From: Octopus sinensis
Lineage: Eukaryota
Reading direction: 5' to 3'
Assembly (NCBI RefSeq): GCF_006345805.1
Contig: NW_021826234.1
Span: forward strand, 1-36,043
Length of the DNA stretch: 36,043 bases
This document shows positions 5,267 through 36,043 of this stretch, one piece after another. The position numbers and the translations under genes were made by a program. Position 1 is the stretch's first letter; every line of letters begins with the position of its first letter. The notes beneath the pieces were generated by a model, which was not told the origin of the DNA, did not search any database, and saw only the letters and a list, made by a program, of their open reading frames with translations.

Positions 5267-7012
5267 TTATTCTGTTCTAAATTGTAATTTAATAATTAAT
5301 AACTTCAAATTTTTCCATTTCCTTACTGGGGGGTTTATTTTTTTCTTCTGGAGATTTTGGGGATTTTTGTTTGATTGATTCGTAGTGATTAAAGTTTTTT
5401 TGGCTTCCAAAAACTAAAGTTTCGCAAAACGTTCATACTTTATTTCTACTTTCCATTGCTTGCTTTATCCATAATAGCTCCATTGAGTCGTTTGAGTTTT
5501 GACTATTATTTGTTACTAAAATCAGAATTTATGAATACTTTGATTATATTTTAATTTGAAAGTTTCCAAAAATATATCTCCATGATTATCATCAGATGGA
5601 GATAAAAATGAATTGATTGCATTAATAAACAGTCTTAATTTATTTTTGATTTATTATTCTTAATTATTTGATTATTCTCAATCTGTTCAGTTTTTTCGTT
5701 TTCCTTTATTAATTCATCTTCTGTTTGAGTTGAGATTTCAGCGTGAAGTACAGTATTTGATGTTTTATCTTAATAATAAAATGGTATGGTGTGTGTCTGT
5801 CTGTCTGTCTGTGTGTCTGTCTGTCTGTCTGTGCACACCACATTCAAATTGTTACAAACCAGATCAAATTGTCAAAACCTTCCCTTTTGTAGTTATTCGA
5901 TAATGAGGCACAATAAAAGGTTGATATCCTCTAAGAACCTTCCTGTCAAAAAATTTAATAAGAAAGAATATCCTCGACGATGAGGTCCCCCAAAACCTTC
6001 AAGTCAAAAAATAAAAACAAATTATTTTCTGCGTTTTTTTTAAAATGAACAATAAGAAAGTCCTCGACTCACATGGTGTGGTCCCCCAAAACCTTCGAGC
6101 TCTTAATAATAAAATGGTATGGTGTTAAATTCCTTAGATCCATCTGGAATGCCGAATCATCTATTGAAATTAAAAATAGGTGTACCGGTTGTGTTACTCC
6201 GCAATCTTGCGCCACCTAAATTATGCAATGGTACAAGGTTGGTTATCAAGAATTTGATGGCTAACGTAATAGAAGCGACAATATTAACAGGTAATTACAG
6301 AGGTGAGGATGTTTATATCCCACGAATACCTCTGATTTCGGAAGAATTACCTTTTAGATTTAAGAGACTACAATTTCCGCTGAAGATAAGTTTTGCTATG
6401 ACAATAAACAAGGCCCAGGGACAGTCTTTAAAGGTAGTAGGCTTATTTTTAGAGAACGAGTGCTTTTCACATGGCCAGCTGTATGTGGGGTGCTCAAGGG
6501 TAGGTAGAAGAGAAAATTTATTTATATTTGCCAAGGATGGACGGACTGCAAACATCGTTTATCCACAGGCCTTAGAATAAGGTTATATCAAAGCAGGTCG
6601 CATTTATATATCTACATAAATTTATACTTATTTAAGGAAACTGCGAGCGTAGCGAGCAGGGCCTCCGCAGGAGCTAGCTCGCAGTGAGCGAAGCGAACTG
6701 CTGAGCTAGTTTGATATAACTGCCGTTTCTTCAAAATTAACATTTTCTGTCTTTTTAGAATTAACAATTTGATTAATTGGTTCTTGTGAATTTAAAATTA
6801 TTTTTGGAGTTGATAAGCAATTTTGGCCCCATTGGATCATGTAATTTGAATTTCCTTCTATTTCGTAAAATAATTCTTCATATTTTTTTCTTAACTTTTT
6901 AAATCTATTTCTCACCAAAAAAGATTTTAAAGTTCCCTGTCAAGTTTTACGTTATGGAAAATACATGTATTTGGTCATTTAAAATGTTGTTGTTTTTAAA
7001 ATCTTTTATCAT
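5267..7012 (-). CDS. IQCC: IQ domain-containing protein C orthologue, interrupted by Helitron A
   Basis: N-terminus [33 protein letters not shown] and C-terminus [23 protein letters not shown] match the two conserved IQCC blocks as recalled. Introns 6937-6964 (28 nt) and 5414-5438 (25 nt). The frame is restored across the empty Helitron site. One unexplained frameshift near 5640-5660. Start and stop positions approximate. Confidence 0.75.
5790..5833 (+). repeat. (GTCT)n microsatellite near Helitron 5' end (second copy about 33050-33095)
   Basis: Direct reading. Confidence 0.9.
6119..6580 (+). pseudogene. Helitron Rep/Hel PIF1-type helicase C-terminal fragment
   Basis: [29 protein letters not shown] and [13 protein letters not shown] motifs. 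N-terminal helicase motifs and Rep domain absent. Confidence 0.9.
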
Positions 7013-7379: not shown

Positions 7380-7495
7380 GCAGAGGTTGTTGCTTTGCTC
7401 TTTAAAGAACTTCGGATCAACATATGCATGTGAAACTGTTTTCAGCAAACTTACGAAAATACAAACTAAGTGTTGAAATTGATTAATGAACACTT
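7380..7495 (+). pseudogene. hAT transposase C-terminal dimerisation-domain remnant
   Basis: FGSTYACETVFSKLTKIQTK followed by a degenerate RNRL-x-EHL with two TGA stops. Confidence 0.7.
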
Positions 7496-7575
7496 TATTC
7501 AACTTTTATGGATATTTTCTTCTAAATTTATTCATTGTTATAACATATAATGTGAAAGACCTAAAAGACCTAAAA

Positions 7576-8187
7576 ATGCTGTACACCCAATTCGCCTACG
7601 TCCTCATATCCGTGGGCCTCTTCATCACGGGGGTCTGTCTCTATTGGGCATTCTGGGGACACTCAAAGGCAGCCGAGTGATCCTCCTCGTCTATTCCTTA
7701 TTGCTGTTTGTCATTTTAATGTTTGTGGTCATCTCCACTATCCTCCTGGCCGTCTACGAGACCGAGGTGGTGGCTCAAATCAAACACTTTCTCCAAAATA
7801 GTCTCCAAGAACGCTACACGGGGGACTCCTCTCACATTTCACCAAGGCCTGGGACTTTTTGCAGTCCAATTTGAAATGTTGTGGAGTAATGAACTACACT
7901 GACTTTAACCAAACCACCAGCTGGACTGTCCGGTACTCCCCTCTTGCCATTTTGCCTGCCAGTTGTTGTTCCACGGAGGACAAGACCCTCCTGACTGAAT
8001 GCACGGAAAACCACAATTTGTATGTGTCGAATGCTAATGTGGGGTGTCTGGGGAGGGGTTGGTGAATTTGGTTAAACAATATGGAGGGGTCACTCTTGCC
8101 ACAATCATTGCCATTTGTTGTGGACTCCTCCTCATGATGCTCTCCGCCTCCTATCTAACCATTCAAGCATATTCACAAGATAAATAA
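7576..8187 (+). pseudogene. Tetraspanin, 5'-truncated, three frameshifts
   Basis: TM2-TM3 hydrophobic segments, large extracellular loop with CCG, PASCC and GC motifs, TM4, TAA at 8185-8187. TM1 missing. No intron recognised. Confidence 0.85.
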
Positions 8188-8238
8188 CATTTACTAATTC
8201 TAATCAATATTATTCTCACTATATTCTAGTGAGTTACG

Positions 8239-9062
8239 GATGGTACAGAGATCCCTACTTTTGTATTTGAAGGGGCTGTCGGAATGTTCTGTCTTCATGG
8301 AATTTACACAAACAACCCAAAGTTCTACCGAGGACTCCTAATGCCTTGTTTGAGCAAAATACTGGAGCCAGAGACCAGTCATAAAGTGGCCATTCGATTA
8401 GCCTCCACAGGACTATTACATTCGAGCACTCCCAAGGACACGCTTGTACTCAATATTCACACAATCACCAGAAATTGTCACTGTGGGGTACCCAATTTGA
8501 CAGTCCTCTCGGATTGGCTGCAGGATTTGACAAAAACGGGGAGGCAATCGACGGGCTTCTCAACTGGGGGTTTTCCTTGTGGAAGTTGGGAGTGTGACCC
8601 CCCTCCCTCAACGCGGCAACCCCAAACCAAGGATATTTCGACTCCCCAAGTCCGAGTCCGTCATAAAAACGGTAAAAATAACGAGTCACTCAGATACGGA
8701 CTCCCCAACGACGGTGCTCAAGCTTTGGCCGATCGACTACAATCACACCACCCAAACAGTGCCATCCTGTGTTTACCGTAGAGAAGGGATATGTCGGAGT
8801 CAACGTCTGCAAAAACAACGAAATGCCCTCCTCACTTCAGTCTGACTTGATAACCTGTCTCCGTCAATTTGTGGACAGGGTGGACTATATCGTCTTCAAT
8901 ATATCATGTTCTAATGTGACTGATTCCTCCACTTCTGAGGACTTGATGACTGTCTTGCAGGCGGTGTACTGTCACCTGAGTAGTCCATAGGTGGTCAAAG
9001 AACGTGACTCCTTGGTGGAGGACAGGGTGGTCCCTATTTGGCTCAAGATATCCCCAGACTTG
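8239..9062 (+). pseudogene. DHODH: Class 2 (mitochondrial) dihydroorotate dehydrogenase, 3'-truncated, with four micro-introns
   Basis: Spliced translation gives [63 protein letters not shown] and WLKISPDL. Introns 8446-8471, 8672-8693, 8759-8781, 8964-8990. 1-bp frameshifts near 8570 and 8665. Homology stops abruptly at about 9062. Confidence 0.9.
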
Positions 9063-9099
9063 TTCTTTAATACAATATTTTCACCGGTTTGCAACTGAA

Positions 9100-9139
9100 C
9101 TGTTTATTGCCCCGAGTTAAAAAGGTTGAGAACCGTGTG
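9100..9139. mobile_element. Degenerate hAT-like terminal inverted repeat (right end)
   Basis: GCCCCGAGTTAAAAAGGTTGAGAACCGTG; reverse complement resembles CAGNGGTTCTCAACC and the 3425 terminus. No TSD found. Confidence 0.5.
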
Positions 9140-9164: not shown

Positions 9165-11400
9165 ACAGCATTTTATTCGCCATTACGGTCAGCATGAGTT
9201 GCAGTTTATTGATCTGTAATGAATCCATACCAAATGTTTAACAAGTTCTTTTTGTTCCCGGTAAGGATAATGACACAGTTTCTTTAGAAAAACAAATTAT
9301 GAAATGAAGACTGTCCCTAAAAAATCTGTTGTAAACCTACTATGAGAATATTGAAATATACATTGTTGGCTGGAAGATATTGTGAAAGAGACAATAGAGT
9401 GAATTATTCAAAATACTTAATAATTAGCTTATGACTAAGTTTTGGTGAACAAAATAACATTTTATTGTCAAAATATGATCGTTACAGCGTTAGAGAACTG
9501 AATTCATCTTTAAATGCGTTTAAATTGATGTAGTAAAGATTTTTGCAAAATACAAATTTTTAATAAACATAAATATTGGATCAAAAATCGATTTCTATAT
9601 TAAAACATTAAACAAATATTAATGTTTCTATTGTAGCAAAATATTTTTAAACACGTTGGTGAAAATAAATTTTTGCTTGCAAAAATAAGTACATGTATTA
9701 AATATGCAGACGTTGGATGCATTCGGTAAACAGTGAACTTTTGGTAGAAACAGTTTTTCATTGGCAGCAAAATTAAGTTACCGACAAATAGGGATAATTT
9801 TAATTTAGACAAAGATACTTCAATAATCTTTCAAAAAACTATCTTTATTGTCGTCAAATAAATATTTTTGATCTCATTTAAATGTTATACAAATTATTTC
9901 AAATACAAATAAAAAGCAACATCTGCCGCCATCCTTTATCAAGCAATATTCTCTGTAAAAATATATAATTATAATGATTATAATGATTAAGGTCAAATGA
10001 GATACTATCCTTTTCATTAATTTTCTTTTCCGAAAGACGTGTAAAAATAAATACAAATTCAAACAAAGAGGTCCTTGGAAGCAACGACTGCAACAACGAC
10101 TACACAGAGATAACGTAGCACAAACACCGAAGAAGCATATGATGGGTTAATTCACTTACAATGGAATTAAACCAAAAGATATATTGTTAGCAAGACATGA
10201 CAGAAGTGTTAAACATATCAATCGTGCCATATATAAACGCAGTTCCTGAAGAAAAACAGTGTCCTAATAGGAATCAAATGAATTTAATGTCTTTCTTTTT
10301 GTCAAATAAATATTTTTTTTAATTTCATTTAACTGTTATAATGTTATAAGGAAAAATTTCAACAACGAATAAAATGAAACATTGTGGCAATTCACCATCA
10401 AGGAATATACTCAGTACGAATTAAATCCACAAATCGAAAATCAAAACTCCTTTAGAACAAATGTGCGTGTGAATACAGTAATGGTGACACTGACTTGCAG
10501 CAGCAAAAGAACACATTTTGTAGGAATTTCTCTGTATATATTTTTTGCGCGTTGTAAATTTAAATTCAAAATATCTCTTAAAAAATAAATAATTAAAAAA
10601 AGGGATACGAGTTTACTCTCCGAGAATTACAAATTTAAAAAAATTGGAGAAATTATAAAACCGGTTTTTTTGAACTCATTGTATATGTTATTCTTTTGCT
10701 GATCGCAAAATTTCTCGAAAGATACTTCGTTGAAATAAAAAAAAGACAAGAAACGAATACACCAATTGTGCCTTATCTTACGCTATCCTGCGTAAAGCTC
10801 CAGAAACTATTTCTGAAAAGTACCACACAATCAATTTTAGTATTGTTTTCAATTAAATTTAAATTCAAATTATTTGACAATATATTACTTTATTTGTACT
10901 TAGAACAGATAAGCCAAAAAATAAATACTGGGAATCAAACAATACAACTGTTTTATTTTATGAAATGAAAATTCGGCATAGAATAAAGTATAGCAAACAT
11001 TAATTAATAATCATTAAGTAATGTTGATTCAAAAAAATAGAAAAATAAATTAAAAAATGTCTGAAAAATAAAATTATACATAACATTTAGAATCGATTTG
11101 ACGATTGGAATTTAAAAAATTAGGTCATCAAAAAAAGTCATCAAAGTGAATAAAATAATATATTATTAAATCATAAACTAAGGAATAATACATATCACAA
11201 TATTGTAAAAACAAACTCATAACCAACAATTTTTTTTAATTCATGGAAGGTTCTGAGCAAATATCAATATGCATAAAGTCCTTGAATAGAAATAATAATA
11301 ATTATGAATAAAAAATTAATATTTGCAGCAAAATAAGAACAACAAAAGAACGTGCGACTCGTCATAATTAATTAAAAGTGTGAATTTATAAATTTTTAGG
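9165..11400 (-). other. Probable exons of an unidentified, possibly decayed multi-pass membrane protein gene or genes
   Basis: Hydrophobic open segments (SSVFVLRYLCVVVVAVVASKDLFV; KCVLLLLQVSVTITVF; FLDGELPQCFILFVVEIFP) and a degenerate internal repeat (about 9850-9930 vs 10300-10395). No consistent model built. Confidence 0.25.
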
Positions 11401-20019: not shown

Positions 20020-20530
20020 AGTCAAATTCATGGTTACTCACAATTATCGACGTTTATTCTAAGTATGCCTACACAGAGAATTTGCGAAATAAAAGTGGGA
20101 AAGAAGTTGCGGAACAACTTAAATCAATCAAACGATTACGAGAAGCTTATCTAAAATGATGTCGGAATCTTCAGAAAAATGTTGGACAAAGCATATTAAA
20201 GAGGCAGTATATTTCTACAATTTAACCAAACATTCTTCTACAGGTTAAATTGTCACATTTTCAAACTTTTTAGGTGATACTCCATTTCATAGATACCGCG
20301 GTATTAAAGGATCTAACCCATTAATTATTTATGATGATGTCTTTGAAGAAGAAACTGTTTCTAAACTTGGAAAAAACATTACTGAGGAAGGTGAGACTGG
20401 AGAACAAAGAAATCCATTAATTATGCATGTTGATGTTTGTGAAGAAGAAACTGAGAGCGAAATTATTGAAGAAAGTGATACTGCAAAAGAAGGAAACCAT
20501 TATATAAAAGGTCATTTTCTCATTATTTTA
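20020..20530 (+). pseudogene. Second Ginger-like/rve integrase remnant with micro-intron
   Basis: WLLTIIDVYSKYAY..LRNKSGKEVAEQL and WTKHIKEAVYFYNLTKHSSTG|DTPF with a 30-nt intron (20244-20273). Acidic tail. Central core deleted. No TIRs found. Confidence 0.7.
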
Positions 20531-20795: not shown

Positions 20796-23700
20796 TTTTT
20801 TTTTTTCAATGTAATTAAATGTGATAAAGTTAGTTAGAGGACTTCCCCGCTTCGTAGATGGAGAAACAGTTACCTCGTACGATGGCAAGGGAAATCCTCT
20901 GAAGGAGCCAGCCCGTCTCGCGTGTGTCATTTCTCTTCAGAGAGATCAGACGTCCGAGCTTATAGAGGAAAGTCAAAGACTTTTCCCCAATGACCCCTGA
21001 AGTCTCGACAGCAACAGGGGCGAATAGATATCGCTCCGAGAGTTCTCTATATTTCGCAATCTTAAGCTTTTCTGTTCTAAGGGACACCGAACCGGCTGAG
21101 ACGGCTGACAAGGGAAGATTAGGTTCAGAGAAAGTATCTGAACATGTCGCGTCCCAAATCAGCGACTTGCCGAACTCAAAGGAGAAGATGGATAGACCGT
21201 CAGGTCTTTTTCCGTCTCCCCTAGCAAGCCCGGCCGGTTCTAGGATTGATGAAATTCCGGCAGCGATGAAACCCCTCAAGACGACGTCATTTAAGGCTGT
21301 GTGGCGTGGTGCCCGCCCAGCACTGCGTCTGCAGGAAAGAGAGTGTAGTCCGTGCTGGTCGATCATGGCCCCACAGCGGCACTTGTGAATTTCACAGATC
21401 TTCAAACCGAGACGCAGAGAAATAGCGACTCTGAGACAGTCGCCGTCTAGTAGTGTCCCGATGTTCGGTAGGGGAAGGGCGTCAAGCCAGGCCCCACTGC
21501 CCGGACTGCAGCCCGCACGAAGACAGGCCAGCCTGTGCTGATCGAAACTCTGAAGCAAGACAGAGGAGAGAGTGTCACAAGTGATCGAATCCCACTGACC
21601 CTGGACGGATGGGTCGGCAGGTCTTTTGGTATACGCAGAATCCCAAAGGTCCAGAGCGGCCACGTGATCAACTGACACTTTTCGTTCGGGAAGGTTTCTG
21701 AGAACGATGTCAGTGAGGGCACGGGATGATGCCAGGGACGAGAGGAAGGCAGGAAGAGCCAGATAAACGGGCGAACGAAGGCCAATCCCCCCGAGATTAA
21801 CAGGCAGGGAAGATTGAAGCCACCCCAGAGCGTCGAAATGGATGTTGCACAGATACTCGGCTCCAGACTTCAAGATAGAATCGATATCGGATAACAGATT
21901 AGGCATGCGAAAACAAGGAGAACTCCTTAGGGTGTACAAAAGCCTCGGAGTAGAGAAATAGTTACGCAGAAGAAAGAAACCCGACGTGGGCATCAATGAG
22001 GAAAAGCCGTTCGATCATGTTTGACAGATTGCTTGCCTTGGCGATGAGCGTTTGTGAGAGGGCCTCGTGACCAATTGGCGAACCAAGGATTACAAGGTCC
22101 TTTGTTTCTGATACCCGCGCGCCTTTTAGAATAGGTTCCAGGGCGTCCAGAGTTTCGGCAAAAAAATCGGAAGGAATATTCAGATTTAGGACTTCGGACT
22201 TGCTTGAGTTTATCTCCAGACCGATGGATGAAAGGGCCGGGATAATGCTCCGCAGGTCGTCTAAGACAGAGCGGGGAGGTCCACAAATCGTCGCGTCGTC
22301 CAAGTACCACATATTTACCGGAGAGCGGACAGAATGAGCGACGGAGTTGACACACATAGCAAATAGGAAACGCCCCAGGGGATCTCCCTGTTGCACTCCG
22401 GTCGATGAGACGATAAAGGAATCGCCAAACAGGAGGAGGCTGGGTTGTGAGTACGAAAGGTGGACCAGAGGATAAGCGGAGGGGGCGAGAGAAAGGCAGG
22501 TCTCGAGCAAATGATCCCGTCTCACTGTGTTAAACGCATTTGATATGTCCAGTTTAACTAAAAGATATTCCAATGAAGAATCCATAAGTTCTCTTACGGC
22601 ATAGGCAGCCGATTCACACCCTCCACTGACGCCGACGCCCAATTGGACTGGCAAAAATTTCGGGACCAACTCGGGGATCACAACGTGGCAAACGAGCTTT
22701 CCGGCCAATTTGCGGAAAACATTACCCACGGCGATCGGCCTGACCCCGTTATCTTTTTTACCCAAAGCAGTGAGATTAGCCGAGAAGAAAATCGCCCGGG
22801 CAAAATCCGGTAAATTCCCACCGATAAGACGGTTACAGAGATTGGTGATAGATTCCAAGAGGAGACGGCCTGCCTCAGCAGTAAGAGGTGAAGTCAAGTC
22901 TTTAATGTGTCCGGGCTTCAGCCCATCTATACCCCCACTGCTGCTTGGGGAAAAACTTTTCAGTGCCTTCTCAACCTGTGAAGCGGTAACCAGCAGTTGC
23001 GGAAGGGCGGTCGTATCGATAGCGGGTTCGGTGCGGGAGTTTACTGGAAGACTGGGGTGCTTGGATCTCAAATTAGCCGAAACGGAAGGAGATGGGGACA
23101 AAAGCCGGTTAGAGGAGGCAACAAGTCTGACAGCTCCACGGACATCGCCATCCAACAGCTTGCTGTTCACCTTACGACGGAGGTAAATGCAATCGGAGGA
23201 AGTTTTAATGTTAACCACAAAGGGCGACACATTTGTGAGAGTCAGAGTGGAGGGAATCGAACTGGGAGGGAAACAGAGAAGTACAATGATCGAATAGGGC
23301 GAGTTGCTGTTTAATAATCGATGCGGGATAAAGTTTTTTAGACTCGCTGTCGGGCCGGGAGGGTTGGATCCCAATACCGAAAACAGCAAAACCAAAAAGG
23401 AGTAACCAGTCAGACTGGTCATTAGATGACAAAGCGCGGTTTATAGCTGTGGACAAAGAGAGAGCAGCTTGAATCCTCGCTGCCTTCGGTATCCGTGCCG
23501 GAATTTGGCGGTTACGGCGAGAAGAATAGATGAATCTTAAAGCATCTTCGGCTGACGGAGATGGACTTTCAGCAGGGATTTCCGGCGGACTGTTGGCCGG
23601 GACCGGCCTGCAAGAACGACAAACAGGGCATTTCCAGATTATGAGAGAAGCTAAAACGCGCCTGGAAAGTCGAACACACGAAAGGTGGAAGAAACTGTTG

Positions 23701-24020
23701 CAGCCAGAACAGTATCTACCTTTCTTCCGATCGTTGCTAGTTTTGCACGAAGAGCAAATAGCCATCGTAGGAAAGAAATAGAAAAGAAAGATGGAAAGGT
23801 ATAAAAAAGAAATAGAAAAGAAAGATGAACAGAAAGAAATGAAATAAAGAAATGAAGAGATAGAAGGACAAATAAAATGAAAGAAAAGAAATGATAGATG
23901 GAGAGATAAAATGAAAGAAAAAGATAAGATAGGTTGACAAAAATACTGACTATTTGAGTTGTTTATGACCAATGAGGATTGTTAATATTCTGACCAACAA
24001 GGACCAACAACGACCACGTT
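20796..24020 (-). mobile_element. CRE-like non-LTR retrotransposon (RT + restriction-like endonuclease), near full length
   Basis: Poly(A) tail (T11 at 20796-20806), about 50% GC, pyrimidine-rich 5' leader. 5' end approximate. No TSD found. Confidence 0.85.
20830..23765 (-). pseudogene. Single ORF of the CRE-like element: PHD finger - RT - CCHC - RLE, two frameshifts
   Basis: C4HC3 PHD (CSSC..CSGC..HLSC..WKCPVC). RT motifs GVRPIAVG, KLDISNAFN, QQGDPLG, WYLDD. CRCG..H..SC, RH, KRPDG..WDAT endonuclease. Frameshifts near 23250 and 21980. Confidence 0.88.
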
Positions 24021-29397: not shown

Positions 29398-30649
29398 CTA
29401 TCTAATATTCAGTGATTTTTTATTTGTGATATCAAGGGCGATTGTCCTTGGCCGCATTCATTTCCATTAACATCGTCAAAATCTAAAGTCCACACAAACA
29501 TCCCTGCTAGTCCATTATCTTTCACATATTTTGCCTACAAGGTAAAGCAAAATTTATTTCTCTTTTCTTTAATACTTCTGATACTTTCATATCACAACCA
29601 ATGATAGTCCTTAACTCCATGAGAAGCTTTTTGCTTATCGTCCCAAACTTCATTATAACCTTGATTAGAATACTAAAAATTTTTTTAGATAAAAAGTATC
29701 TTTATATATGCTAGAATTCCCGATTCTTTTGTTATTGGTCCTTCGCTAGGTCCCCCAACGATTTATCTCCAATTTTTGGATTTTTTGATTTAGTTTTGAA
29801 TCCTTGTCCGTAGGTTGGTAACCCGATGAGTAGTTTTGACTTTGGAGCACCGTGCTTAGACCAATATCTGACTACATAATCCTGTAAATTTAGAGTTTAT
29901 TTAATCTGAGTACCGTGTTGAAAGTATCAGCATCGTTTATTCCATATAATCCTGTATGATGGCCAACAGTGTTCGAAAATTGACCGTAAAAATCATAAGT
30001 CATTAAGTTGATGTAATCAAGGTATCTAATTGTCAAAATGTAAATATTTAACCTAGAAATTTCTTTTATTTCATATGAAACCTGAATTGTCGAAACTCCT
30101 GCTGAAACAGCTGCTGTCAACAAATATCTTTTTGAGCCTTTTTGAAATTCTGTGCTCATAGTTTTCAAAAGTCGACTGTACGCTTGTTTTTGATTGTGAG
30201 GAAATTCCCAATCAATGTCAAATCCGTCAAAATTGTATTTCTTTAAAAAGTCTTTTGTATTTTTAGCAAATGTTTTTGCATTAGAGTCGCTTCTTGATAC
30301 AATCGTAAATTCATTGAGCAGTGTGTTCCACCCTCCGACAGAAAGCAGGATTTTCAAACGAGGATTCAAACGTTTAAGAGAAGTGATTCTATGAAAATCG
30401 TTATATTGACCTAATATAGATGTAAAAAATTACCTCCAGGCAAGTCAGACCAATTGTCATTTGAAATAATAGAAAGATTATTTACATCAATGGTGCAGAA
30501 TGCATATATTATATGCGTACAGAGGTTTGCTAAATGGCTGTCATCAAATTCAAACCCCCCTGGCCTGTATTTCGCCCAATTTGTATAATAGCAGAATAAT
30601 ACTGTAATAATTATTCATTTTTTATACTACCTTTAGATTCCACTGACAT
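29398..30649 (-). pseudogene. GH18 chitinase with intact 5' half and damaged 3' half
   Basis: CYYTNWAKYR, CTHIIYAF, LLSVGGW, catalytic DGFDIDWEFP, INLMTYD, WTLDFDD. Introns 30602-30630, 30411-30433, 30026-30052, 29882-29913. Frameshift at 29752-29756, TGA at 29592-29594, two expected introns lacking GT. No signal peptide or chitin-binding domain seen. Confidence 0.9.
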
Positions 30650-32815: not shown

Positions 32816-33052
32816 CGATATTTTTTAATTGATTGTATTGCAATTAATACAGCTCCCAATTCCGCGATTATATGTCAAATTATTGATAACGTCATTCGCA
32901 AACTCAATGTTGATAGGAAAAATTTTTATTTACTTATTTCTGATGCTGCTTCATATATGGTTTCTTCTGGAAAAGTATTAAAGCAATTATATTCAAATCT
33001 ATTTCATGTCACTTGTGTGGCGCATTTCTTAATAATAAAATGGTATGGTGTG

Positions 33053-33091
<39 letters not shown>

Positions 33092-33129
33092 GTGTGCACA
33101 CCAACTTCAAATTGGCAAAGTAAAGATAA

Positions 33130-33600
33130 ATTCCCCCCAAAAAAAATTTTCTGCATTTTGGTTAAAATGAACAACTACGATGTCCTCGACTTACATGATG
33201 AGGTCCTTAAAACCTTCCCCCCAAAAAAAATTAAAAAAAAAATTTTCTGCATTTTGGTTAAAATGAACAACTACGATGTCCTCGACTTACATGATGAGGT
33301 CCTTAAAACCTTCCCCCCAAAAAAAATTAAAAAAAAATTTTCTGCATTTTGGTTAAAATGAACAACTACGATGTCCTCGACTTACATGATGAGGTCCTTA
33401 AAACCTTCCCCCCAAAAAAAATTAAAAAAAAATTTTCTGCATTTTGGTTAAAATGAACAACTACGATGTCCTCGACTTACATGATGAGGTCCTTAAAACC
33501 TTTCCGCCAAAAAATCAAAAAATTATTTTCTGCATTTGATTAAAATGAACAACGTTAATGTCCTCGACATTCATGATGAGGTCCATTAAAACCTTCGAGG
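33130..33600 (+). repeat. About 95-bp minisatellite, about 5 units, inside Helitron B
   Basis: Unit core GGTTAAAATGAACAACTACGATGTCCTCGACTTACATGATGAGGTCCTTAAAACC at about 33160, 33256, 33351, 33446, plus a diverged fifth unit. Diverged units also in Helitron A (about 5950-6100). Confidence 0.92.
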
Positions 33601-33952
33601 CAAAAATCTCACGTATTAAGAATATCCTTGATGAAAACGACAGCGAGAATATTAACAATGATGAACTCCCAATTATTCGCGATAAAGAAATTCAATTCAT
33701 TTTATGATTTTCTCTTTAAAATTAAATGCATATATCATTATTGACCATGAATCAAAATTAAAGCTATTATCATATTTGACTTTGACAGAATGTGCAATTA
33801 CAGATTGCACGACCTTGAATAGAGTGTGCAATTAACAGATTTTGAAAAACACTTTGATAGTTGAAACCACATTAGCACAATCATTAACACAATTTACCAC
33901 CAATTGACAGCGCAATCAGAAGAATTTGCGTAAAAATATTAACTATTTAGTT

Positions 33953-34180
33953 AAGTTTTTCGTAAAGATAGAATTTATTTTCGGTATGCCTCTTTTCCTA
34001 AACTTTTTTATTATTCAAAAATAATTTTTTCAATAGATAACCGAAGGAGGGAAGACGACCTTAAGAAAAGAAGTTTTTCGTAAAGATAGAATTTATTTTC
34101 TGTATGCCTCTTTTTTCCTAATATTTTTTATTATTCAAAAATAATTTTTTAAATAGATAACCGAAGGAGGAAAAACGAAG
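33953..34180 (+). repeat. About 118-bp tandem duplication inside Helitron B
   Basis: AAGTTTTTCGTAAAGATAGAATTTATTTTC...GATAACCGAAGGAGG at 33953 and 34071. Confidence 0.85.
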
Positions 34181-34260
34181 CTGAAGAAAAAACGGTCAGC
34201 TTAAGGTAATTAATTAAATCTTTTTTGTGTGTCGCTTTTTTGGCTGCTGCTACTCTGCCT

Positions 34261-34320
34261 GCCGCATTTCCGCTTGCCCCATCTCCGGCTGCCCCATTTC
34301 CGCCTGCCCCATTTCCGCCA
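34261..34320 (+). repeat. GC-rich 15-bp x4 repeat (GCCCCATTTCCGCCT)
   Basis: Direct reading. Confidence 0.85.
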
Positions 34321-34574
34321 GTGGTTTGTCTAATCAAGGTCACTAAGCTAAATCTCCGGACTATAAAGGCTTTTAAGCATTATCTTAATTGGCTGTTAAA
34401 AAAATTAGACAGGTTGTTGCCGTGGCGGCAGAGATTTTTTTTGTTTATACTATTTTACAAATTTTTAAAGTTTTTTTTTTGTTTTTTTTATTTTTTTGTT
34501 TTTAAATTATTTATTTTATATTTGTTTTTTTTATTTTTTTTGTTATTTTCTAAAAATTCAACCGGATTGAATTT

Positions 34575-35030
34575 TTAAACTCCTTAGATCCCTCTGGAAT
34601 GCGGAATCATCTTTTAAAGTTAAAGATAGGCGTTCCAGTGGTTTTATTACGAAATCTTGCGCCACCTAAATTATGCAACGGAACGAGGTTAGTTATCAAA
34701 AATTTGATGGCTAACGTAATAGAGGCGACGATATTAACAGGTAAGTATAGAGGTGAGGATGTTTATATTTCACGAATTCCGATAATTACTGATGAATTAC
34801 CATTTAGATTTAAAAGGCTGCAATTTCCTTTGAAGATGAGTTTTGCAATGACAATAAACAAGGCCCAGGGACAGTCATTAAAGGTAGTTGGGTTATTTTT
34901 AGAGAGTGAGTGCTTTTCACATGGACAGCTGTATGTGGGATGCTCGAGGGTAGGCAGAAGAGAAAATTTATTCATATATGCCAAGGAAGGACGGACGACA
35001 AACATCGTTTATCAACAGGCGATAGAATAG
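34575..35030 (+). pseudogene. Helitron PIF1-type helicase C-terminal fragment (second copy)
   Basis: 130/143 aa identical to the 6119-6580 fragment by manual alignment. Confidence 0.9.
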
Positions 35031-35186
35031 GGTTACATTAAACCAGGTAGTCTTATACATCTACATAAATTTATAGTTGTTTGATGAAACAGGCCCTCCG
35101 CAGGAGCTAGGTCGCGGTGAGCGAAGCGAGCTGCCGAGCTAGTATTACATAATTGTGCCTTCAGAATTAAATCACATTATCTAGAG

Positions 35187-36043
35187 CAGTGGTTCCCAAC
35201 CTTAAGGTGCTCGCGGAACCCTTTTGGGCTAATTTATTTTTTGCGGAACCCCTCCAATTCAATTATTATAATTTCACTTAAAACATAATAGTAATAACCA
35301 AAAACAATTTTAATGTGAACATTGAGGTAATTTTTTATCATAGCATAGTTGTGTAACGTTAGGAGTTATTGTTGACAACTGTATCCTCATATCAGCGGAA
35401 GCATTAAGTTTATTTCTATATTTTGTTTTGGTGGATGTATATATTGAAAACCCAGACTCGCATAAGTAAGTCGTTGGAAAAGGTAATAGTTTACGTATAG
35501 CCTTTTCTGAGATATCTGGATATTTTGAAATGTATCCCCTCCAAAAATTAAAAAGGGATTCATTTTTATATAACTGATATGACGCTGATTCTGATGTCAA
35601 ATCAATAAGATGTTCATATTCAATTGATGTTAGATTTGCTGGTATTACTTTAACTTTGAATGGGTTTTGAACCCAATCGTCATCAAATTTACCCGAAAAA
35701 TATTTCGCAATGTTATCGTCCAAAATAATCAAATGATCTTTGATGTCCTGAAGAACTGTATTGTCCAATGATGATTTTGATTCTTCGAGAAACTCTTGTA
35801 AAACGGCAAAGCATGCAATATTATTATCTACAGATGATCGCCAAAATTCGGTTTTCCGTTTTAAGGTCATTACTTTTTTATTCAAAATAAAAACTGTCTG
35901 ATATTTTCCTTGTAGTGATAATGTAAATTTATTCAGTTTTTCATAAATTGAAACCAAATATGCAAGTCTCTGTAACCAAATATTGTTTTCCAAATTTTTG
36001 TAAATTGAAAAATTTGACCAAATATTGTTTTCCAACTAACTCA
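35187..36043 (-). mobile_element. 3' end of a hAT (Buster/ZBED5-like) element; transposase C-terminus open at 35310-36035, runs off window
   Basis: TIR CAGTGGTTCCCAACC at 35187 after target-like ATCTAGAG. WLQRLAYLVSIYEKLN, LLPFPTTYLCESGFS, KTKYRNKL, QCSH-stop. Confidence 0.88.

Follow-up and report, generated by a model that had tools for sequence, protein, structure and literature searches.

A partial tetraspanin–DHODH duplicate between hAT sequences in an Octopus sinensis assembly, with a probable origin in gap filling

How does a GC-rich block carrying parts of two genes come to lie between the remains of a DNA transposon? The question is raised by a stretch of 36,043 nucleotides from the Octopus sinensis assembly (contig NW_021826234.1), here called the window. 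It consists mostly of transposon remains: Helitron-like derivatives, pogo DDE pieces, a non-LTR element and, besides the hAT sequence considered below, a second hAT (35187-36043, minus strand). A sequence-only reading had described a GC-rich tetraspanin–DHODH block, truncated at both ends and lying between hAT transposase remains and a hAT-like end, and had proposed that a hAT element captured it. The block itself is there: GC content is 0.45-0.50 over 7501-9000 as against 0.25-0.34 on either side (window background ~30%), and its pieces match PF00335 and PF01180. It stands out because live genes in this genome have 42-50% GC, while dead sequence drifts toward ~30%. An Rfam scan of the window gave no matches, and an exact look-up of 11 window ORFs in the protein collection found none recorded. 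The two Helitron-like derivatives (5768-6710 and 33027-35145) are short and 86% identical; both begin with TC..., contain a (GTCT)n microsatellite and tandem repeats of 95 bp, code for a Pif1 helicase C-terminus and close with a GC-rich hairpin and CTAG. These 95-bp repeats are expanded in the copy at 33027-35145, whose end lies ~40 bp from a hAT terminus.

The block and its parental locus

We compared the block with its closest relatives, starting from the tetraspanin. An 81-residue piece covering EC2 (7820-8062) was used as phmmer query against 1.84 billion representative proteins and gave a single match of 100% identity, over 74 aligned residues, to the 265-aa protein XP_029655869.1 (P0001, 'tetraspanin-1-like [Octopus sinensis]'; cluster mate XP_029655029.1, 268 aa). 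This protein is encoded on contig VCDQ01013043.1 of the Octopus sinensis assembly GCA_006345805.1, hereafter L001. There, a complete, intronless tetraspanin gene of 265 codons including TM1 is followed by a 48-bp spacer and by DHODH, in the same gene order as in the window. The intact parental pair, which the sequence-only reading had advised locating, is thereby identified: Window positions 7565-9063 correspond to L001 10173-11671, with the same introns and a counterpart spacer, at 97.2-97.4% identity (97.35%, or 97.15% by MAFFT). From this alignment the block spans 7565/7567-9063, ~1.5 kb, and it reads throughout on the plus strand. The DHODH of L001 yields a full-length frame on removal of six GT-AG introns of 26, 22, 23, 27, 25 and 26 nt; the position of the sixth, close to the 3' end, was set by eye. 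As a side observation, the record calls no gene at this apparently intact DHODH (L001 10847-12130, 48 bp downstream of the tetraspanin), probably because gene predictors reject introns of 22-27 nt.

The tetraspanin fragment occupies 7567-8187 and rests on PF00335 matches of its pieces, phmmer and the alignment to L001. Aligned to the full-length parental protein, it starts at about residue 58, past TM1, and continues to the end: TM2, TM3, EC2 with its CCG motif and TM4 are represented, TM1 is not, and the Pfam matches accordingly begin at profile position 64. The stop codon TAA stands at 8185-8187. The frame is broken by +2 (7638), -1 (7836) and +2 (8055), and a further change of -6 (8174) is in frame. 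With TM1 missing and three frameshifts present, the fragment is a pseudogene derived from the tetraspanin family and no member protein of it. An intergenic spacer of 52 bp follows (8188-8239), which differs from the 48 bp of the parent by -2 and +6.

The second fragment is a class 2 DHODH pseudogene (8240-9063), identified by PF01180 matches of its pieces, by matches to DHODH structures in the PDB, namely rat and human class-2 DHODH (E 5e-10), by tblastn and by alignment to L001. It runs from ATG 8240 to ...KISPDL at 9063 and comprises ~237 of ~378 residues before it is cut inside exon 5; the C-terminal half was absent when the entire window was searched by tblastn. A complete class 2 DHODH catalytic domain is therefore not what the window holds, and it is the L001 parent that appears complete. 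The frame is broken by -1 (8258), -1 (8576) and +1 (8665). Within this range lie four GT-AG introns: intron 1 (8446-8471, 26 nt), which is identical in the parent and whose splicing restores the frame; intron 2 (8672-8693, 22 nt), placed by parent comparison; intron 3 (8759-8781, 23 nt), with one substitution relative to the parent; and intron 4 (8964-8990, 27 nt), which holds an in-frame TAG. We regard the four introns as real because the DHODH frame of the parental locus runs without interruption once they are taken out. The truncation claimed for both ends of the block is thus borne out. Likewise, the earlier argument for a DNA-level copy as opposed to a retrocopy stands: The window copy keeps the spacer and all four introns within its range, it covers two genes, and no poly(A) is found at 9063. 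We also considered that the gene pair had been split in place by transposon insertions, and rejected this: The window contains neither the DHODH C-terminal half nor a TM1 exon, and the intact parent lies elsewhere.

The pair has been copied more than once. Contig VCDQ01004506.1 (L002) carries a third copy of the two-gene unit (9902-11181 and 11190-11400), which is older (91% identical) and combines an intact tetraspanin paralogue with a DHODH that has lost ~1.06 kb by internal deletion. This unit is not bounded by hAT ends, and its limits differ from those of the window block; a 5' fragment from a non-LTR element, with a PHD-like zinc finger, follows it directly. Taken together, the tetraspanin–DHODH unit has undergone at least three duplications (L001, L002 and the window), each with limits of its own.

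Relative to L001, the window copy shows 21 substitutions (10 synonymous, 10 non-synonymous and 1 intronic). Polarised from the parent, they lean toward AT: 10 are GC>AT and 2 are AT>GC. In addition, there are nine indels, in order +2 TC, -1 T, +2 GG, -6, -2, +6, -1 T, -1 T and +1 A, and six of them disrupt the frame. The AT bias would be expected if it is the window copy that decays, under mutation that favours AT. The ratio of indels to substitutions, 9:21, is high, and some of the indels could be assembly errors. From the reading frames alone, the frameshifts had seemed attributable to homopolymer assembly errors at G runs; we discarded this explanation since the parent alignment puts the lesions elsewhere and several of them are 2 or 6 bp in size. 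The block is a young, decaying, non-functional DNA-level partial duplicate of a gene pair of the same genome, and the fragment has no plausible function.

The hAT flanks and the two junctions

Immediately upstream of the block lies the C-terminal tail of a decayed hAT transposase ORF (7380-7557, plus strand), supported by a shuffle-tested alignment and, for 7411-7470, by tblastn. Its core motif, FGSTYACETVFSKLTKIQTK at 7411-7470, is followed by stops and a frameshift. The tail aligns with the hAT tails at window 35310-36035 and L002 20146-20807, with scores of 49 and 42 that none of 2000 shuffles reached. It had been described as a remnant of a hAT dimerisation domain, and the alignment to two hAT tails of the same genome is compatible with this assignment, although the remnant itself gives no Pfam match at E<=1. 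One of the two comparison tails has a weak match to PF05699 below the threshold (E 0.0037, 17.5 bits versus a cut-off of 21.4). No recognisable hAT was found in the sequence upstream of 7380, and a search of three contigs, L001, L002 and L003 (VCDQ01013059.1), for the hAT family of the remnant returned only a related TIR, in L002.

Downstream, the block is succeeded by 74 bp of hAT 3' subterminal region and terminus (9064-9137, plus strand), recognised from the L002 hAT end and the window end at 35187. The right TIR occupies 9120-9137 and reads CACGGTTCTCAACCTTTT on the minus strand. It has a 16-nt exact core in common with the L002 hAT end at 20146, CAGTGGTTCTCAACCTTTTT, and resembles the other hAT end of the window at 35187, CAGTGGTTCCCAACCTT. 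The hAT-like right terminus suspected earlier is therefore present, with a degenerate tip that reads CACGG instead of CAGTGG; the 8 bp beyond it are TGTTTTAA. Across the three hAT ends (window 35187-35330, L002 20146-20215 and window 9064-9137) the common TIR is CAGTGGTTC[C/T]CAACC. At 9082-9095 there is also an inverted TIR-like subterminal motif, CACCGGTTTGCAAC, as at other hAT ends of the genome; one or two subterminal motifs of these ends, GCGGAACCC or CGCGGACCCC, repeat the TIR core in inverted form, so that the ends could fold into hairpins. We dismissed the idea that 9082-9137 (56 bp) is an independent mini-MITE: It has no TSD, and other hAT ends also carry such inverted copies.

A left TIR, the absence of which the sequence-only reading had already conceded, was sought across the window with three patterns and up to 3 mismatches, and none was usable; no TSD was found either. 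The left hAT end may lie outside the window or may have been destroyed. The spacing of the flanks is informative nevertheless. In two other hATs, TYxCE motif and terminus are 285 and 300 nt apart; here the interval amounts to 147+74 = 221 nt when the block is subtracted. Judged by these other hAT families, the two flanks are apparently continuous and ~65-80 bp of hAT sequence appear to have been lost. We infer that both flanks belong to one hAT copy. Since internal hAT sequence stands on both sides in the expected order and orientation, it would be the block that was inserted into the hAT and not the reverse.

The left junction is marked by a 9-bp tandem, GACCTAAAA twice (7558-7575, plus strand), where the parent has a single copy (L001 10175-10183). 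Such a tandem had been noted before, and it is the sole site of this kind in the window, against 0.01 expected by chance. One correction is needed: The second copy (7567-7575) is neither transposon nor junction filler but encodes the parental tetraspanin codons D-L-K, followed by M, and only the first copy is extra. The parental sequence at this point is ...CTGGAA GACCTAAAA ATG..., that of the window ...GTGAAA GACCTAAAA GACCTAAAA ATG..., and parent homology starts two bases (AA) ahead of the second copy. Because the unit is preceded by AA and itself ends in AA, we read its duplication as a probable re-priming stutter during copying. An ORF spanning this junction had no match in the protein collection. 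At the right junction, parent homology ends after ...GACTTGT (9063).

Whose genome: a probable dicyemid source

The introns described above are extremely short, and they are not the only ones of this kind in the window: In a GH18 chitinase gene (29420-30570, minus strand), the GT-AG introns measure 23, 27 and 32 nt. Among animals, introns this short have been reported only for myxobolid myxozoans and Dicyema japonicum (PMC13644364). The latter lives in the renal sac of Octopus sinensis and has a genome of 67.5 Mb with 36.7% GC and 49% repeats (PMC6736024). Moreover, the tetraspanin has no cephalopod orthologue among its matches, the best of which, past its own paralogue, are at most 31% identical. 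From the ultra-short introns (22-32 nt) and the lack of cephalopod orthologues, the window and the contigs L001-L003 are probably DNA of a dicyemid parasite inside the octopus assembly. That they come from one and the same genome is supported by transposon copies that the window shares with these three contigs at 95-98% identity: A pogo copy is common to the window and L002 (95%), and a non-LTR copy is common to the window and L003 (97.7%).

Several observations were made alongside. The chitinase is an old, AT-rich pseudogene (33% GC) with a frameshift at a G5 run and an in-frame TGA at a conserved position, and its 5' splice site has apparently been lost. The non-LTR family (window 20830-23972, minus strand; L003 9454-11443; L002 17284-19437) has 50-52% GC and an N-terminal PHD-like zinc finger; copies 97.7% identical on different contigs indicate recent activity. 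Related reverse transcriptases are annotated in records of O. sinensis and Acanthosepion pharaonis.

If the assignment is correct, genes annotated on these contigs as Octopus sinensis (e.g. XP_029655869.1 and XP_029655029.1) may be mislabelled, and the contigs would constitute a usable source of dicyemid genome sequence. This point of provenance may matter more than the block itself, which is one more dead duplicate of the Pack-TIR type.

Origin of the block and comparison with known systems

We propose that gap filling in an old hAT, independent of transposition, gave rise to the block, which would be a single-copy Pack-TIR (Pack-hAT); for this chain as a whole we estimate a probability of about 0.6. 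The process would be initiated by a double-strand break in a resident hAT copy that was dead or dying, at a point downstream of the transposase ORF and short of the 3' TIR. Repair would then have copied ~1.5 kb from the tetraspanin–DHODH pair as an ectopic template, with entry and exit by very short microhomology and the loss of ~65-80 bp of hAT sequence. Re-priming at the left junction would have produced the extra GACCTAAAA copy, and AT-biased substitutions and frame-breaking indels would have followed as the copy decayed. Of the capture proposed in the sequence-only reading, one part is upheld, namely a DNA-level copy bracketed by internal hAT sequence; the further notion that a hAT took up the segment and carried it lacks the hallmarks of mobilisation: There is no left TIR, no TSD was found, and a second copy with the same junctions was found neither in L001-L003 nor, via the junction ORF, in the protein collection. 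Gap filling also fits better than capture and mobilisation because the apparent hAT loss is small and the breakpoints are internal.

Mobilisation nevertheless deserves to be weighed. A non-autonomous hAT could have taken the two-gene fragment and then transposed, its left end having been lost or lying outside the window and the block being one of several copies. A block between internal hAT sequence and a hAT TIR is compatible with such a history, as is the repeated duplication of the unit. However, neither left TIR nor TSD is found in the window, the L002 copy has no hAT ends and other limits, junction-sharing copies are missing from the contigs and the protein collection searched, the tip of the right TIR is degenerate, and multicopy Pack-TIRs are a minority in animals (PMC8277862). 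We therefore judge this course of events unlikely. An extension of it, in which a still-mobile dicyemid Pack-hAT family repeatedly disperses whole or near-whole gene units and L001, L002 and the window are its products, strikes us as decidedly improbable; if it existed, such a family would open a way for new genes to arise in a genome that is otherwise noted for its reduction. A different objection is that the hAT link is incidental: The fragment would have been inserted by end joining or ectopic repair, and the flanks would stem from two unrelated hAT copies. The window is pieced together from nested transposon fragments, and no family consensus joins the two hAT pieces. Furthermore, disabling lesions are proportionally more numerous in the hAT tail than in the block, so that the tail had probably died before the block came in. 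Against this view, the order, orientation and spacing of the flanks are those of a single hAT 3' region, and two independent fragments in register would be a coincidence, so that we hold this explanation to be possible but doubtful.

The remaining explanations concern where the block came from and whether it is real. Reads of the genuine tetraspanin–DHODH locus could have been misjoined into a repeat region, a concern that is nourished by the position of both junctions in repetitive DNA. Yet the window copy differs from the parent by 21 substitutions and indels such as +2, +2, -6, -2 and +6, which are atypical of read errors, and the two flanks are in register and come from one kind of element; given the divergence from the parent, a chimeric assembly is very unlikely. 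An equally slim chance is left to foreign DNA, that is, to horizontal transfer or contamination from another organism with a compact genome, be it a virus, a ciliate or another parasite. The strong GC contrast with the flanks and the tiny introns would suit such a source, as would the GC content of only 33% in the chitinase, the other gene of the window. The latter value is, however, accounted for by the decay of this pseudogene; the chitinase itself has introns just as short, the contigs with the parental unit share transposon families with the window at the identities given above, and L001 shows the same contrast of GC-rich genes in AT-rich transposon DNA. Finally, the Helitron-like element whose 3' end (hairpin and CTAG) lies at 6710 might be held responsible, since Helitrons are known to capture genes and this terminus is only 855 bp upstream of the block. 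However, the block is then downstream of the terminus and outside the element, and the second Helitron copy (33027-35145) contains no such block, which makes Helitron capture extremely unlikely.

Gap filling in a resident hAT, the reading we prefer, can be set beside several known systems. At Ac/Ds and P elements, filler DNA and abortive gap repair arise when template switching inserts ectopic sequence, and short junction duplications and stutters are left behind; PMC8277862 likewise cites such cases. The window resembles these cases in the ectopic sequence within a transposon and in the short junction duplication; the classical cases, in contrast, follow excision and involve large internal deletions near the termini, whereas the hAT of the window keeps most of its 3' region. 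Turmoil-1 of C. elegans is likewise an animal DNA transposon that carries protein-coding host fragments, but its fragments lie within terminal repeats and it forms a multicopy family (PMC2572040). Plant Pack-MULE and Pack-TYPE elements (Pack-CACTA etc.) share with the window DNA-level host gene fragments that keep their introns between transposon termini; unlike what is seen in the window, they are defined by a pair of TIRs with a TSD, many are multicopy or mobile, and fragments from several source loci are frequently combined in them (PMC8903248, PMC6379663).

The closest comparison is offered by the 370 Pack-TIRs described in 100 animal genomes (Tan et al. 2021, Nat Commun; PMC8277862). In this survey, single-copy Pack-TIRs are attributed mainly to gap filling that does not depend on transposition and takes place where resident TIR elements are broken internally, with a small gap that has a median of 4.6% of the element, breakpoints biased to the interior and a median microhomology of 2 bp (PMC8277862). 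The window agrees with them in that a non-transposon fragment with its parent elsewhere lies inside a TIR transposon and is single-copy as far as searched, and also in its internal breakpoints, little transposon loss and ~2 bp of microhomology at the left junction. It departs from them in showing one TIR and no TSD, and in a fragment that spans parts of two genes with introns and spacer, which is explained by the extreme compactness of the genome. The lineage of the window, probably dicyemid, may lie outside the species surveyed. Capture of the Pack-TIR type is already known, and as such the event is a fairly ordinary one. What the locus would add is an ultra-compact animal genome to those in which gene fragments are copied during repair at DNA transposons; in such a genome, even a short patch can carry parts of two genes.
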